64,000 nucleotides of DNA, taken from Dendrobates tinctorius. Its lineage: Eukaryota. A model generated the notes under the pieces. It was not told the DNA's origin. It worked only from the letters and a program-made list of their open reading frames with translations, and did no database searches. The position numbers were made by a program, and so were the translations under genes. This document shows, piece after piece, positions 46,416-53,518 of the stretch. Location of the stretch: NCBI RefSeq assembly GCF_039654945.1, contig NW_027361696.1:56854001-56918000 (forward strand), given 5' to 3'. Numbering within the stretch: position 1 is the first letter of the stretch; each line of letters opens with the position of its first letter.

Positions 46416-48260
46416 CCACTTCCTTTACAAATCCTTTGCACACGCTCATTAGATGCCTCAACACAAAAGCTAGGATCTGACTCAGTCCATTGCTGCTAAT
46501 ACACATGTGAATTTCCTGAAAGATCAGGCAGAATCAGTGTGGAATAGCAAATTTTTTTATTATGAATACAGATAGTTTTCTGAAAAATGGAAAAACATTG
46601 TTAAAAACTTTTAAAGCATGCAGTAGATTTACCATAAGAATGTGATATAGACAGTAAGTCATTGACACATTCATTTACTCCATCGATAGATTAGGTAATG
46701 TTTCACATGACAGCTGCTGGTTACAGTCTTACATTATTTGCACAACCTTGGCTTCCCATCATTTTGCAGTTTCCGTGAAAATAAAGGTTGAAAATATAAC
46801 TCTGTTTCTGGTCTCGTGAACATGGTCACATGACAGATCAGTGTCGTAAGGATCCAAAATAGAGAGTAGTGCCAACAGGTGCTGTACCTTCATAGAACTT
46901 AATTTTAAATGGGGCAAGTCCCTTTAGATGCCGCGCATGCGCACCGAATCTAGGTGTACATACCCAGCTTCATTGACTATGTGCATGTGGGTCGCCGTCC
47001 CAGGGCTGTGGGGTCCTCGGTACCACGCCCGATGAGCTTCAATGGGAGTTGTCACGGCAGCTGGGACCCGGCCCGTGGCCCTGGGCGCCCATTGTAATAG
47101 AGTGGGAAAGTTCAGTGTGCTTATGAGGATTAGAATGAATGAGTCGTGACGCCACCTGTGGTGTTCGGCAATGAAGATGTTAAGCCGATGCTGCAGACAG
47201 ATCCTCTGGGACAGATGGTGTGGTGCAGGAATGATGTTATAGCCCTCCACAGGCAGGGCTTTAGTCCCAGGGCAGTGAGATGAAGTGACACTTAGATGGT
47301 GTAGTGTCGGGCGCAGGGGATGTAGCAGTGCCGGGCAGGGTGACGCAGGAATAAGTGGAGGACACCAGGGCATGTAGTTCCAAAGCTTTACTCACAGTCT
47401 GTTGTGGGACAAGAGCCCGCATCCGTGCCGTGTCCTCCGGGTCAGGAGCTCAGCCAACTTCCAGGCAAGATGAAGTACTCCTTTCCAACACTCCGCCAAC
47501 ATATGTGCCTTTTCTGAACGTCTCCCTCTTAGCGCCTTTAGTGAAGTACTCCCAGTACTGAGTTACACTGGAGTTCCTCCTGTCAGATGTTCCTATGAAC
47601 TCTACTTGTATGGCAGACAGCTGTAGCCTGCTTTGGGGACTCCTTACTACCTAGTCCCGGCTCACTATCGATGCTGTTGTGCCCCCAAGTATGGTGTGGG
47701 AATAAAGCGGTGACTACTTCTATTCCTCCGGTGTCTGCTGCTGGACCGTTAGTATCCATACAACCTTGGGGACCGGACCCCGAACTTGCGCTTAGAACTT
47801 GGGAAGGGTTCTCCTCTAACCCTAATCCTTAGTTCTCTTCTTCTCCTCACGTTCCGTACTAATCCTTTCCTTTTTATGGAGAGTCAGGCTTTCTATCAAA
47901 GTTCCTTTCCTGTGCCAGTGGACCCAGGTCACTGAGGTCGGCTGCAGCACTTCCTTCATCCATCCCACTCAGGGGATCTTCTCTCACAGACTGACCTCGT
48001 CAGCATCCTGTGACATACTGACTGAATCCTAAACCCTTCCCGCTCTTTTGATGCAGACTAAACTCCACCTGCCTCCCAGATCGCTTCGTGTTCCAAGCAG
48101 GGAGCCACCAAAGGGTGCTTTGCTACACTACTATGTTGTATGGGATGCAGGTGTTGGATGTGTGGTCAGGTGTCTCCACCTTACCTGAATGGTGGGGCAC
48201 CACACCTCAGGAGGAGGTGCAGTACCTCTGTGGCGACTGAACCCTCAGGGGCGCCACATA

Positions 48261-48268
48261 CCCCCCTC
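48261..48268 (-). promoter_or_regulatory. Polypurine tract (GAGGGGGG) just upstream of the 3' LTR
   Basis: Minus strand reads ...ttaacgaggggggta|TGTGGCGCC. Confidence 0.75.
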
Positions 48269-49300
48269 GTTAAACACAGCACGTCCACGGGCTGTAAAAG
48301 AAGCAAAGATGGACAAATACAGGAACAGGAATTTTGTGATGCTAAATAAACAGTTCTTATCTAAACTTCCCGATGTGGGAGGCACCGAGTCTTGAACGTT
48401 ACAAACATTTTAACTAACTATCTATATCTTACTACAGTTCCTAATTCGAAGTGCTATTTCAAATATCATCAACATACTCCTTTATCATTTCTTCTTTCAC
48501 ATTTTCTACTTTCTATTAACCTTAAGTGACAACCGCTGATGCCTGGTTCGTCACCTGCAATTTTCAAATTATCTTTATTCAAATCCTTCATCTCTTCATT
48601 AAAACATTCCTAATAGTTATTGCTATTAACTAGATTCTATATAAAAGCTGTTCTCTCATTATTAATACTTTCATAAGGCACATTATAAAACACTTCACAT
48701 CAAAACTTCAATAAAATTCTTGTAAGTGCTGGACACCGCTCCCAGCCGGGATCTCTTGCAGTGTCCTTTTGGTGGGAGCCATGCTCCAAGTGAGGTAGTC
48801 CTTATTCAAAAAGGCTATGTAAAATGAAGAAAGGGCACCTAAAGAGGTGCAACTATGTACATTAAAGTTCTGGATCATTCAGTGTCCATGATCTCCACAG
48901 TTCAATAAGAAAAACGCTGCCAATAAAACTGGAATCAAAGAAACATAATAAACAATGGGGCACAACGGTGCAAATACCCTCCTGGGTAACAAAGTTAGTT
49001 ATCTTTAGTGTTAGTGGTCCCCTCCTGGGGTACTTGGAAGCTGATGACTTGGGCTGCTTCCAGGGAAGAACTTGTGAGCATCCTCTTCCTGCTTGTGGGT
49101 TCACATAGGATGAGGTGTTGGCAGCTGGGTGGATTGCTGCCTGAGGTACAGCGGGTGCAACTACCTGTACCATAGGGTGGCTAACGGGTGGAGGTAGCCT
49201 GTCTGACCTTGGCAGGTGTGATCACTACAGTAGGAGGTATTCCTGCCGGTGGGACATAGGCCTTCTCTTTCTTGTAGGCCGCAATAAAATCTTCGGGGAT

Positions 49301-50746: not shown

Positions 50747-50801
50747 TGTTTAAGTTCAATAAATCTTAGTCACACAGAACCCGGTGGCACCAGGCTTCGT
50801 C

Positions 50802-50819
50802 ATCCTGTTCGTGATGCCA
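50802..50819 (-). promoter_or_regulatory. Primer-binding site TGGCATCACGAACAGGAT, complementary to the 3' end of a tRNA-Ser(CGA)
   Basis: Lies 3 nt after the 5' LTR. Matches 17/18 with ...ATCCTGTTCGTGACGCCA, a vertebrate tRNA-Ser(CGA) 3' end recalled from memory. Confidence 0.8.
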
Positions 50820-53518
50820 AGTTGGGTCGCCCTCCCTGGGCTGTGGGGTACTCGATACCGGGCCCGATAAGCTTCAATGGGAGTTGTCACGGCAGCGGGG
50901 ACCCGGCCCGTGGCCCTTGGCGTCGATTGTAATAGAGTGGGAAAGTTCAGTGTGTTTATGACGATTAGAATCAATGAGTCGTGAAGCCACCTGTGGTGTT
51001 CGGCAATGAAGATGTTAAGCCGACGCTGCAGACAGGTCCTCTGGGACAGATCGTGTGGTGCAGCAATGATGTTATAGCCTTCCACAGGCAGGGCTTTAGT
51101 CCCAGGGCAGTGAGATGAAGTGACACTTAGATGGTGTAGTGTCGGGCGCAGGGGATGTAGCAGTGCTGGGCAGGTTGACGCAGGAATAAGTGGAGGACAC
51201 CAGAGCATGTAGTTCCAAAGCTTTACTCACAATCTGTTGTGGCACAAGAGCCCGCATCCGTGCCGTGTCTGCCGGATCAAGAGCTCAGCCAACTTCCAGG
51301 CAAGATGAAGTACTCCTTTCCAACACTCCGCCAACATATGTGCCTTTTCTGAACGTCTCCCTCTTAGCGGCTTTAGTGAAGTAGTCCCAGTACTGAGTTA
51401 CAGTGGAGTTCCTCCTGTCAGATGTTCCTATGAACTCTACTTGTATGGCAGACAGCTGTAGCCTGCTTCGGGGACTCCTTACGACCTAGTTCCGGCTCAC
51501 TATCGATGCTGTTGTGCCCCCAAGTCTGGTGTGGGAATAAAGCGGTGACTACTTCTATTCCTCCGGTGTCTGCTGCAGGACCGTTAGTATCCATACAACC
51601 TCGGGGACCGGACCCCGGCCTTGCGCTTAGAACTTGGGAAGGGTTCTCCTCTAACCCTAATCCTTAGTTCTCTTCTTCTCCTCACATTCCGTACTAATCC
51701 TTTCCTTCTTATGGAGAGTCAGGCTTTCTATCAAAAGTTCCTTTCCTGTGCCAGCGGACCCAGGTCACTGAGGTCAGCTGCAGCACTTCCTTCATCCATC
51801 CCACTCAGGGGATCTTCTCTCACAGACTGACCTCGTCAGCATCCTGTGACAAACTGACTGAATCCTAAAACCTTCCCACTCTTTTGTGCAAAACTAAACT
51901 CCACCTGCCTCCCAGCACGCTTTGTGTTCCAAGCAGGGAGCCACCAAAGGGTGCTTTGCTACACTACTATGTTGTGTGGGATGCAGGTGTTGGAGCGTGA
52001 CCAGGCGTCTCCACCTTACCTGAATGGTGGGGCACCACACTTCAGGAGGAGGTGCAGTACCTCTGTGGTGACAGAACCCTCAGGGGCGCCACACATGCAC
52101 CAGAGCTGCTGCGAGTCACGGTGTCTGTGACTTTGCTCGACACTGCGCATGCATGGGGAGCCGCTAAAGACTGCACATGCGCGGGGATCCGCTCGAAACT
52201 ACGCAAGCACAGGATGTTAGAGCAGATTCCTGTGACATCGGCGCACCCTGGAACAATCAGAATGCATTGGCATTGACAATACGACGAGTCCGTGACTGAA
52301 AAAAAAATGAAGCAACAACCCTTTGACTGAAACAGAATGTACTATATAAAGTGATTTTTGCAGATGATTACAGCCCCATTTTGTTTGCATCACTAACAAT
52401 ACACTGTGGACAGTTTAGTTGCTACAAATGACATGACAGGTTCCCTTGAAGGGCAATAATATTGCAATGTGGTGCGGCGGTAGCTGTGGGTGAGGTACTC
52501 ATCTCTTACATCCCAGCACATTACATGAAAGTGGGGGTCCTGCATGGGTGTGTGGATTTGTACTATGGGAGCATTATTGTCTTTGCAGTCCACATGTAAC
52601 CGATTACTTTGATTGGCCAGGAACAGATGTTTTACAGTTTAATGAGGGAGACCACCAGTCAAAAATAACCTTTTTACTGGATGATAACTTGGAGGGGATT
52701 ATATACGGTAGACAGCAGGTACACAACTTGCACATGTTTCCTTCACAATACAGAGCATTTTCCATCCCTTCTTCTTCTCCAAGTTAAGCTCAGTACTATA
52801 GTCCAGTTAGCAAGATTCCTTAAATCAACCCACAGTTCCGAGACTTTTTCCCCTCTAATAAACTAGCTTGCCAATAAAAGCGTTACCTAGCTATTCTTCT
52901 ACTGATGCTCTGGAACTCCCGTGTCGGGCACGCTCTTTGTCTTATCTACTCTATCCCATCTAGGACCATTACCACTGTGAGTCATTAACTCTGGGATGTA
53001 CTGCCAGGACCAGTCTCAGACCGATTAATCACTCCATTAATTCAGTCACTTCTTTTTCCTTCTGCTAGGATCTCACTATCCGCATCACGGTCTCCTCTCA
53101 CATTAGGGACACCCACATCATGCAGTACTGCTCAGTTCAGACCATGCAGCACTGCTCAGTTCAGACCTTAGGTCTGCTTTCTACCCACACCGGGCCCTAT
53201 CTGATGTCCTGACAGGAAATGGTCTCTGCCATTCACTTCAGCCCCTCCCACTTGGGGCCAGTCCAAAACATTAACCCTCACTTTCCCTACTGTCAAACAC
53301 CACATATTGCCATCATCATTAATGCATATCACATTACACACCAAAAATACAATGTTCTTAATATGACCACATACTGTATTGTGGTCTTCACAAGACTGAA
53401 ACACATGGGGTCCCAAGGGTATCACTCTGTATTAGACACAGTCATCACAAACTTTGTGTATTCATTTCTTAGAGTCTAAATCTCAAAGAAGACAATTTTT
53501 GTGTGGCACAGAACTTAC

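Follow-up and report, generated by a model that had tools for sequence, protein, structure and literature searches.

A complete LTR retrotransposon lacking gag and pol in Dendrobates tinctorius carries a gene for a predicted cold-shock-domain protein

Introduction

LTR elements normally rely on the nucleocapsid part of gag as a chaperone of their RNA, and non-autonomous members are usually seen as stripped-down passengers which keep only cis signals or, at most, a gag. A locus in the genome of Dendrobates tinctorius raises the question of whether an LTR element can do without gag and pol and instead carry a gene for a different RNA-binding-type protein. A previous sequence-only reading of this locus described a complete LTR retroelement with a cold-shock-domain (CSD) protein as its only cargo, and proposed a non-autonomous, helper-mobilised family with a dedicated RNA-binding accessory protein which could aid packaging, tRNA annealing or strand transfer and which is not a simple retrocopy of a host gene.

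In this study, we analyzed a stretch of 64,000 nucleotides (NCBI RefSeq assembly GCF_039654945.1, contig NW_027361696.1, positions 56,854,001 to 56,918,000), referred to as the window, to examine the structure of the element, its protein, its relatives and the selection acting on it. All structural claims of the sequence-only reading were reproduced, and its observation stands. Its interpretation was supported in part: the complete element without gag or pol, the CSD, the existence of a family and the argument against a recent retrocopy were supported, while the helper, RNA binding by the protein and its role in replication remain inferences. No description of such an element was found in the searchable literature.

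Structure of the element

The element was located on the minus strand at 46988-52093 (5106 bp). Its two LTRs are 95.05% identical over 1273 alignment columns, corresponding to 63 differences and 2 gap columns (K2P 0.051), and enclose an interior of 2564 nt. The following features were identified:

52094-52097 (-), 5' target-site duplication CATG, identical to the 4 nt at the other flank
50823-52093 (-), 5' LTR, 1271 nt, TG...CA
51221-51231 (-), motif TGTGAGTAAAG in the LTR, also present at 47386-47396; its core GT[GA]AGTAAAG is kept in 4 of the 5 aligned LTRs, while the solo LTR has GTTAGTAAAG; by inference an AGTAAA poly(A) signal variant or a 5' splice donor
50979-50991 (-), partial copy of the primer-binding site (PBS) inside the LTR (GGTGGCTTCACGA; 3' LTR copy GGTGGCGTCACGA at 47144-47156), which in the other species changes in step with the real PBS
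50802-50819 (-), PBS TGGCATCACGAACAGGAT, 18 nt, tRNA-Ser type, 3 nt after the LTR, with one mismatch to the Anomaloglossus version
50777-50797 (-), conserved GC-rich hairpin directly after the PBS, with 8 pairs in 3 elements and one compensatory change; by inference a candidate dimerisation or packaging signal
49301-50746 (-), the single long ORF, 481 open codons plus stop, with the likely start M100 at 50449
50258-50350 (-), predicted N-terminal helix, a possible coiled coil
49532-49675 (-), predicted long charged helix (E/R/K/Q-rich) leading into the CSD
49310-49504 (-), CSD with a predicted five-stranded OB barrel
48295-49300 (-), AT-rich 3' interior with no coding region conserved between elements; its 103-aa ORF at 48862-49173 had no Pfam match
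48277-48294 (-), invariant block CAGCCCGnGGACGTGCTG upstream of the polypurine tract (PPT), which follows a pyrimidine run and so resembles a 3' splice acceptor (function inferred)
48261-48268 (-), PPT GAGGGGGG, 2 nt before the 3' LTR and conserved in the relatives
46988-48258 (-), 3' LTR, 1271 nt
46984-46987 (-), 3' target-site duplication CATG
39504-40858 (+), solo LTR of a related subfamily, 1355 nt, 74-81% identical, with its own CATG duplication at 39500-39503 and 40859-40862

The structural hallmarks of an LTR retrotransposon, i.e. paired LTRs ending in TG...CA, a target-site duplication of 4-6 bp, a PBS next to the 5' LTR and a PPT next to the 3' LTR, are thus present. The copy in the window is old, as shown by the LTR divergence of about 5% and one PBS mismatch. 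The contig also carries Tc1/Sleeping-Beauty-type and hAT-BED transposase ORFs. Three runs of N (30227-30358, 35900-36076, 36268-36467) lie outside the element and were left untouched.

The ORF and its predicted protein

None of 2000 shuffles of the GC-rich region of the ORF reached its length of 481 codons, the maximum being 310. That the ORF is still open says nothing about selection since insertion, because the chance of staying open was about 0.33. Translation from M100 would give a protein of 382 aa, the same length as the Ranitomeya variabilis protein, and this numbering is used in the following.

In Pfam searches, the CSD family PF00313 scored 28.7 bits for the whole ORF and 33.8 bits for the domain alone, against a gathering score of 27, and no other Pfam family matched any ORF of the element. 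The AlphaFold2 model showed a helix at residues 34-64 (pLDDT 86-94), a disordered Pro/Ala-rich stretch of about 190 residues, a helix of 48 residues at 259-306 (pLDDT 84-96) and five beta strands at 314-381. The charged helix also appeared in a second AlphaFold model (P0002). Across the two models, about 190-230 residues had a pLDDT below 50, and no folded domain other than the two helices and the CSD was seen. The N-terminal helix carries the motif M-D/N-P-E-x-L-x-A-E-x-E-E-L-x-R-Q-L, which is shared with 3-4 relatives. A Foldseek comparison gave E. coli CspA (1mjc) as best match (TM 0.86, rmsd 1.7 Å), followed by the CSDs of YBX1, YBX2 and LIN28, and a profile search against PDB gave the YBX1 CSD with E 1.4e-7 and the same long beta3-beta4 loop.

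Nucleic-acid binding can only be inferred from this fold, and the motifs associated with it are partly altered. RNP1 is present (RGFGFI in the window, GWGFI in the relatives), while RNP2 is degenerate and keeps the Phe, but the His is replaced (LFFS in the window, VFV-T/A/N in the relatives). Of the four stacking residues of YBX1 (W65, F74, F85 and H87), mapped on the alignment of the profile search, only the two Phe are invariant; the His position is T, A, N or S, and the Trp position is variable. Two of the four classic base-stacking positions of YBX1/CspA are not conserved.

Related elements in dendrobatoid frogs

An exhaustive phmmer search of 1.84 billion representative proteins returned only four real relatives, all of which are "uncharacterized" proteins of dendrobatoid frogs. 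All five proteins matched the CSD in Pfam and nothing else; no Gag, capsid or zinc-knuckle family was found in any of them even at E up to 1, and neither were protease, reverse transcriptase (RT)/RNase H or integrase domains. Each relative lies inside an LTR-flanked element of the same layout, although the two Ranitomeya copies have a full 3' LTR and only a partial 5' LTR. The Anomaloglossus copy has LTRs of 1284 nt with 99.45% identity and the duplication GGCCC. The Phyllobates copy has LTRs of 1247 nt with 100% identity, the duplication ACAA and a perfect tRNA-Ser PBS, which is the exact complement of the last 18-19 nt of tRNA-Ser-AGA/TGA as printed in PMC10359600. This supports the tRNA-Ser assignment at the family level; the version in the window and in Anomaloglossus differs in the acceptor-stem part and may correspond to another tRNA-Ser gene. 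The Anomaloglossus and Phyllobates copies are essentially unmutated insertions and show very recent transposition despite the lack of pol. Only one full copy was seen per locus retrieved.

Comparison of the elements showed that the conserved non-coding blocks are exactly the expected cis signals: the LTR ends, the PBS plus hairpin, and the pre-PPT block plus PPT. In a tblastn comparison of the interiors, no second coding region was conserved. Over 66 gapless CSD codons in five elements, identity was 0.67-0.83 at codon position 2, 0.55-0.71 at position 1 and 0.23-0.42 at position 3, which indicates purifying selection. dN was 0.52-0.69 in the helix plus CSD block against 0.93-1.5 in the N-terminal half; as dS was saturated, these values do not amount to a proper dN/dS. 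The N-terminal two thirds of the protein evolve fast.

The possibility of a recent retrocopy of YBX, LIN28, CSDE1 or CARHSP1/CSDC2 was not supported. No vertebrate host CSD gene appeared among the phmmer hits at E up to 1e-3, CCHC knuckles are absent, and the ORF recurs only inside LTR elements.

Interpretation

The explanation we favor, with moderate confidence, is a frog-specific family of non-autonomous LTR retrotransposons which keeps every cis signal for reverse transcription and integration and which carries, in the gag position, one gene instead of gag-pol. Its protein has an N-terminal, probably oligomerising helix, a long disordered Pro/Ala linker, a charged helix and a C-terminal CSD. 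Our data establish the anatomy of the element, the family across five genomes, very recent transposition in two of them and purifying selection on the CSD. By inference, RT, integrase, protease and probably capsid come in trans from an autonomous LTR element or endogenous retrovirus that also primes with tRNA-Ser, and the CSD protein binds the element's own transcript as it is translated. It would then act like a nucleocapsid or an L1 ORF1p-type chaperone or adaptor, helping this RNA to compete for the helper's particles and to undergo tRNA annealing and strand transfer. No helper was seen in the window or in the 8-kb flanks of the frog loci, and pattern scans of viral and metagenome collections gave only chance hits or nothing. 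Also, the Ranitomeya variabilis copy has lost the end of its 5' LTR and its PBS, yet keeps an intact ORF and is annotated as a gene, which would also fit a host-beneficial or domesticated role. The copy in the window is an old and probably dead insertion of this family.

A further-reaching possibility, to be regarded as tentative, is a lineage of LTR retroelements that has replaced the whole Gag-Pol programme with a single self-encoded CSD RNA chaperone which marks the element's own RNA in cis and delivers it to a helper's particles. This would be an LTR-element counterpart of L1 ORF1p, the first known case of a CSD doing the nucleocapsid job in a retroelement, and the first of a non-autonomous element actively competing for its helper rather than passively mimicking it.

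Alternative explanations

Two other explanations appear unlikely to a similar degree. Firstly, the ORF could be a very derived Gag in a gag-only non-autonomous element of the TR-GAG or BARE2 type, with the zinc knuckles of the nucleocapsid replaced by a CSD and the capsid part degenerated into helices and a Pro-rich linker. The ORF is the first after the PBS, as gag is, and the order of an N-terminal helix, a Pro-rich segment and a C-terminal nucleic-acid-binding-type domain would agree with this; the copy in the window even contains PSAP, a late-domain-like tetrapeptide. Gag-only non-autonomous LTR elements are known in plants (for example PMC13570524, PMC8704663). However, in addition to the absence of Gag-type Pfam matches, neither AlphaFold model shows a capsid-like helical bundle, and PSAP is not conserved in the relatives and is expected by chance in a Pro/Ala-rich stretch.

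Secondly, the ORF could be passive cargo, i.e. a host or foreign CSD gene transduced once by an LTR element and simply carried along, or a gene of benefit to the host, without a role in the element's own replication. LTR elements can capture host sequence, as in maize Bs1, and the CSD profile is slightly closest to the eukaryotic Y-box type and shares its loop length, which is compatible with an ancient capture. The Ranitomeya variabilis copy without a PBS also fits this view. However, passive cargo should decay, whereas the CSD is the only interior sequence, apart from the cis signals, that survived divergence deep enough to saturate third codon positions. It is also retained in copies that transposed very recently, and no host paralogue was detected in the phmmer search.

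Least likely are internally deleted endogenous retroviruses that retain one accessory or regulatory gene of the parental virus (acting perhaps in RNA export, translation or counter-silencing) with the full-length sibling provirus as helper: the 4-bp duplications, TG...CA LTRs longer than 1.2 kb, the tRNA PBS and the conserved splice-donor-like and splice-acceptor-like motifs, which would suit a complex expression pattern, fit such a parent, but the ORF sits in the gag position rather than at the 3' end where accessory genes usually lie, no env or pol remnants remain in any of the three complete copies, and no viral protein in BFVD resembles it beyond generic phage and giant-virus CSDs.

Comparison with known systems

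Non-autonomous LTR retrotransposons mobilised in trans, such as mouse ETn/MusD and VL30, mammalian MaLR/THE1 and plant LARD, TRIM, TR-GAG and BARE2, likewise have complete LTRs, PBS, PPT and target-site duplications but no pol, with an interior that is unrelated to, or much reduced from, that of the helper; solo LTRs form by recombination, and persistence depends on a helper. Here, the interior carries one conserved, selected gene for a CSD protein, which is neither non-coding filler (ETn, VL30, LARD, TRIM) nor a recognisable gag (TR-GAG, BARE2). MaLR elements also have an ORF of unknown function, but with LTRs of about 350-450 bp and no CSD.

LINE-1 ORF1p is also a retroelement-encoded protein without an enzymatic domain, built from an N-terminal helix or coiled coil followed by a small single-strand nucleic-acid-binding domain, and its cis-binding and chaperone activity are established. 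It belongs to a different element class (non-LTR), has a different fold (RRM plus CTD) and shows no sequence relation, so that the functional analogy for the frog protein is hypothetical. In the retroviral or Ty3 nucleocapsid, the CCHC zinc knuckles similarly form the C-terminal domain of the first ORF, with tRNA annealing, strand transfer and RNA packaging as the expected tasks; the frog protein has no CCHC motif and no capsid domain upstream, and its predicted fold is an OB barrel.

With the Y-box proteins (YBX1/2/3) and other eukaryotic CSD proteins (LIN28, CSDE1, CARHSP1), the frog protein shares the CSD fold, the RNP1 motif G-[FWY]-G-F-I and the long beta3-beta4 loop of the Y-box type. 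Identity is only about 25-30%, and none of these proteins reached E 1e-3 in the exhaustive search. The loop motif R-x-D-x-x-x-H-L-x-x-G-H-x-x-R-D, with these residues invariant in the five elements aligned, is family-specific, the flanking architecture is different, and the gene has no introns and is LTR-flanked.

Conclusions

A family that keeps a different kind of predicted RNA-binding protein under selection, and that transposed recently, points to an active strategy for parasitising a helper. It would also give a natural test of whether a CSD can stand in for a nucleocapsid or an ORF1p-type chaperone. The finding bears on the very large, repeat-rich genomes of poison frogs, in which LTR elements are major contributors (PMC6278860, PMC11152451), and several "uncharacterized protein" gene models in frog RefSeq annotations appear to be ORFs of this element.

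Structure of the LTR element

The LTR element described in the sequence-only reading is real and lies on the minus strand. Two direct repeats were found by a repeat search and were defined by BLASTN as LTRs of 1271 nt each, which are 95.05% identical over 1273 columns, corresponding to 63 substitutions, 2 gap columns and a K2P distance of 0.051. Both LTRs begin with TGTGGCGCC and end with GACCCA, and the element is flanked by CATG on both sides. Three bases after the 5′ LTR lies the 18-mer TGGCATCACGAACAGGAT (PBS), and two bases before the 3′ LTR lies GAGGGGGG (PPT). The interior comprises 2564 nt, and the three N runs of the window are located outside the element. 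The main positions in the window are as follows:

46988-52093, minus strand: the complete LTR element
49301-50746: the frame open for 481 codons
50449: the likely start codon, M100, of the ORF
51221-51231 and 47386-47396, minus strand: splice-donor-like or AGTAAA poly(A)-like 10-mer in the LTRs
50979-50991 and 47144-47156, minus strand: partial copies of the PBS in the LTRs
48277-48294, minus strand: invariant block resembling a pyrimidine tract plus CAG acceptor, about 30 nt before the PPT
39504-40858, plus strand: solo LTR of a related subfamily, with flanks at 39500-39503 and 40859-40862
40711-40723, plus strand: partial copy of the PBS in the solo LTR

One frame of the interior is open for 481 codons, and none of 2000 shuffles of the GC-rich half of the interior reached that length. 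Alignment with the Ranitomeya variabilis protein places the likely start at M100, which results in a protein of 382 residues, the same length as that relative. We also considered whether the window ORF had lost a C-terminal tail that is still readable in the downstream 103-aa ORF. This was rejected, because BLASTP against the tails of two relatives gave E values of only 0.45 and 3.1; the tails vary from 0 to about 130 residues and are not homologous. Likewise, an ORF of 149-150 aa at the end of each LTR was rejected as a gene, because it has no Pfam match and the related solo LTR is open in a different frame over the same DNA. Rfam and tRNA scans of the window found nothing.

The solo LTR has a length of 1355 nt and is 74-81% identical to the LTRs of the element. 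It carries the same 4-bp duplication, CATG, as the full element, which may hint at a target preference, although the two complete frog copies described below have ACAA and GGCCC.

The encoded protein and its predicted fold

Among Pfam families, only the cold-shock domain (CSD) was reported, with scores above its gathering score of 27 (28.7 bits for the ORF and 33.8 bits for the domain alone). An AlphaFold2 model computed from a five-sequence alignment shows four parts, namely a confident helix at residues 34-64, about 190 Pro/Ala-rich residues of low confidence, a confident charged helix of 48 residues at 259-306, and a five-stranded barrel at 314-381. A cold-shock or OB fold had been expected for the domain in the sequence-only reading, and Foldseek placed the predicted barrel on E. 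coli CspA (TM 0.86, rmsd 1.7 Å), followed by the CSDs of YBX1, YBX2 and LIN28. In the viral structure library, only phage and giant-virus CSDs matched. A profile of the five family CSDs hit the YBX1 CSD best (E 1.4e-7) in an almost gap-free alignment that shares the long beta3-beta4 loop of Y-box proteins, while bacterial Csps scored nearly as well.

The RNP1 motif is intact, whereas RNP2 keeps its Phe but has lost the His, and the position of the first stacking Trp is variable. Nucleic-acid binding, inferred from sequence and predicted fold alone, is therefore plausible but not certain. The family has its own loop motif, R-x-D-x-x-x-H-L-x-x-G-H-x-x-R-D, with these residues invariant in the five elements aligned. 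No zinc knuckle, capsid, protease, RT or integrase family matched any of the five proteins, even at E values up to 1. A second model, of the Phyllobates protein from a young copy, shows the same parts and nothing capsid-like.

Relatives in dendrobatoid frogs

An exhaustive phmmer search of 1.84 billion representative proteins resulted in 18 hits at E values up to 1e-3. Fourteen of these (E 3e-7 and weaker) are multi-CSD proteins; the few with a source name come from dinoflagellate or other protist transcriptomes, while most are metagenome or Logan contigs, and the similarity is to CSDs in general. The four real relatives (E 5e-16 to 4e-11) are proteins annotated as "uncharacterized" from Ranitomeya variabilis, Phyllobates terribilis, Anomaloglossus baeobatrachus and Ranitomeya imitator, all of which are dendrobatoid frogs. 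They share the order helix, linker, helix and CSD, and three or four of them share the N-terminal motif M-D/N-P-E-x-L-x-A-E-x-E-E-L-x-R-Q-L. Word-indexed protein searches with the whole ORF and with the family profile were dominated by Pro/Ala low-complexity words and returned nothing new, and a region-restricted search found only two known members. Exact-pattern scans of the viral collection with the LTR start (2 hits) and with the LTR-end/PBS 14-mer (over 120 hits) gave only chance hits in phage contigs, the 14-mer being too short to be useful, and a 28-base LTR-start pattern found nothing in the metagenome collection.

The loci of the four relatives were retrieved and their LTRs, duplications and ORFs were analyzed.

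Copies of the element at the four frog loci (species; LTRs; duplication; state of the copy)
Anomaloglossus baeobatrachus; 1284 nt, 99.45% identical; GGCCC; complete
Phyllobates terribilis; 1247 nt, 100% identical; ACAA; complete, 5.09 kb overall
Ranitomeya variabilis; full 3′ LTR, 5′ LTR lacks its last part; not determined; PBS lost, ORF intact
Ranitomeya imitator; full 3′ LTR, partial 5′ LTR; not determined; ORF broken into three pieces, gene model is a chimera that starts inside the ORF

In the R. variabilis locus (L001; 7217-7996 and 10898-12083), the loss of the last part of the 5′ LTR and of the PBS brings the LTR directly next to the ORF. The 382-aa ORF is still intact and is annotated as gene LOC143808358; it could be a domesticated or LTR-driven gene, or just the result of a recent deletion. 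A palindromic insertion of roughly 670 bp (L001 9410-10078) with mirror-image ORFs on both strands, probably a MITE-like element, is located within the interior of this copy. In the R. imitator locus (L004 7182-8438), the ORF is split into three open pieces, and the database protein CAJ0923454 is a chimeric model that starts inside the ORF and is spliced to distant downstream exons. The two Ranitomeya copies are as far apart as copies from different genera. Several old lineages of the family therefore coexist.

The Phyllobates PBS, TGGCGTAGTCGGCAGGAT(T), is the exact complement of the last 18-19 nt of tRNA-Ser-AGA/TGA as printed in PMC10359600 (see also PMC3299991). The Anomaloglossus PBS differs in the acceptor-stem part but keeps TGGCG and CAGGAT, and the window PBS differs from it at one position. 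This version may correspond to another tRNA-Ser gene with that acceptor stem. About 170 nt before its end, each LTR also holds a partial copy of the PBS preceded by CACAGG, which thus looks like an old LTR-end/PBS junction. This was seen in both LTRs of the window element, in the solo LTR, and in two of the retrieved frog loci (L002 at about 11170, and the 5′ LTR of L003). The tRNA-specific part changes in step with the real PBS and reads TGGCGTCACGAACA in Anomaloglossus and TGGCGTAGTCG in Phyllobates.

Conserved blocks and codon-position identities

BLASTN between elements aligned only the LTR termini, the LTR-end/PBS region and the region before the PPT, and translated comparison of all stop-free segments found only the CSD ORF as shared coding sequence. 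The conserved cis blocks are the LTR start; a core GT[GA]AGTAAAG about 400 nt before the LTR end, which is kept in four of the five aligned LTRs and has one mismatch in the solo LTR; the PBS, followed by a GC-rich hairpin of 8 pairs with one compensatory change; and an invariant CAGCCCGnGGACGTGCTG just before the PPT. If the splice-donor-like or poly(A)-like 10-mer of the LTRs and the acceptor-like block before the PPT were spliced together, the whole interior would be removed.

Within the CSD, 66 codons align without gaps in five elements, with identities of 0.67-0.83 at second positions, 0.55-0.71 at first positions and 0.23-0.42 at third positions. Third positions are thus essentially randomised while the protein is kept. 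These codon-position identities were used instead of a classical dN/dS, because dS is saturated between all available copies. The dN values are 0.52-0.69 in the block of helix and CSD compared to 0.93-1.5 in the N-terminal half.

Other repeats and ORFs in the window

Besides the LTR element and the solo LTR, the window contains the following features:

36468-38077 and 3008-4623: two Tc1/Sleeping-Beauty-type transposons with terminal inverted repeats of about 195 bp (96-98% complementary), the first of which holds a 282-aa transposase ORF and adjoins two N runs
41345-42936, plus strand, and 61555-63923, minus strand: two hAT-type elements with BED zinc-finger transposase ORFs, broken into overlapping frames
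152-913, plus strand: a 253-aa ORF with a weak GDSL-lipase/esterase match (E 0.0016, below threshold), the kind of ORF1 seen in some CR1/L2-type LINEs
11100-13700, 32640-33460, 5480-6310 and 58000-61500: several tandem arrays, comprising a 23-bp satellite with about 90 copies, 29-30-bp minisatellites, and a repeat of about 820 bp (with 180-bp sub-arrays) that has internal palindromes

Discussion

By its structure, the element belongs to the LTR retrotransposons, and there to the non-autonomous kind. It does not qualify as an autonomous element or as a gag-only (TR-GAG) element. Its domain is a member of the CSD family by profile and predicted fold, and it is not a recent retrocopy of a known vertebrate CSD gene. 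No description of a CSD in any LTR element was found in the searchable literature, which did not include Repbase and Dfam, and two poison-frog repeat papers mention neither cold-shock nor non-autonomous LTR elements.

The sequence-only interpretation, a non-autonomous and helper-mobilised family with a dedicated RNA-binding accessory protein, is partly supported. Our analysis demonstrates that the element has the full cis apparatus of an LTR retroelement and no enzymes, that members of the family transposed very recently, and that selection acting on the elements has preserved the CSD. An element without RT and integrase that still transposes must use a helper, which is established for ETn/MusD, VL30 and BARE2, but the helper is an inference here, as are RNA binding and the role of the protein in mobilisation. 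We favor the reading that the protein is translated from the full-length RNA and would bind that RNA through the CSD, perhaps as an oligomer through the N-terminal helix. It would then act as a nucleocapsid-like or ORF1p-like chaperone or adaptor, favoring packaging and reverse transcription by the machinery of the helper. Alternatives are a very derived Gag, passive or host-beneficial cargo, and a retained retroviral accessory gene.

The window copy itself is old, with 5% LTR divergence and one PBS mismatch. Its ORF would stay open by chance about one time in three, so this copy is best seen as a fossil of the family.
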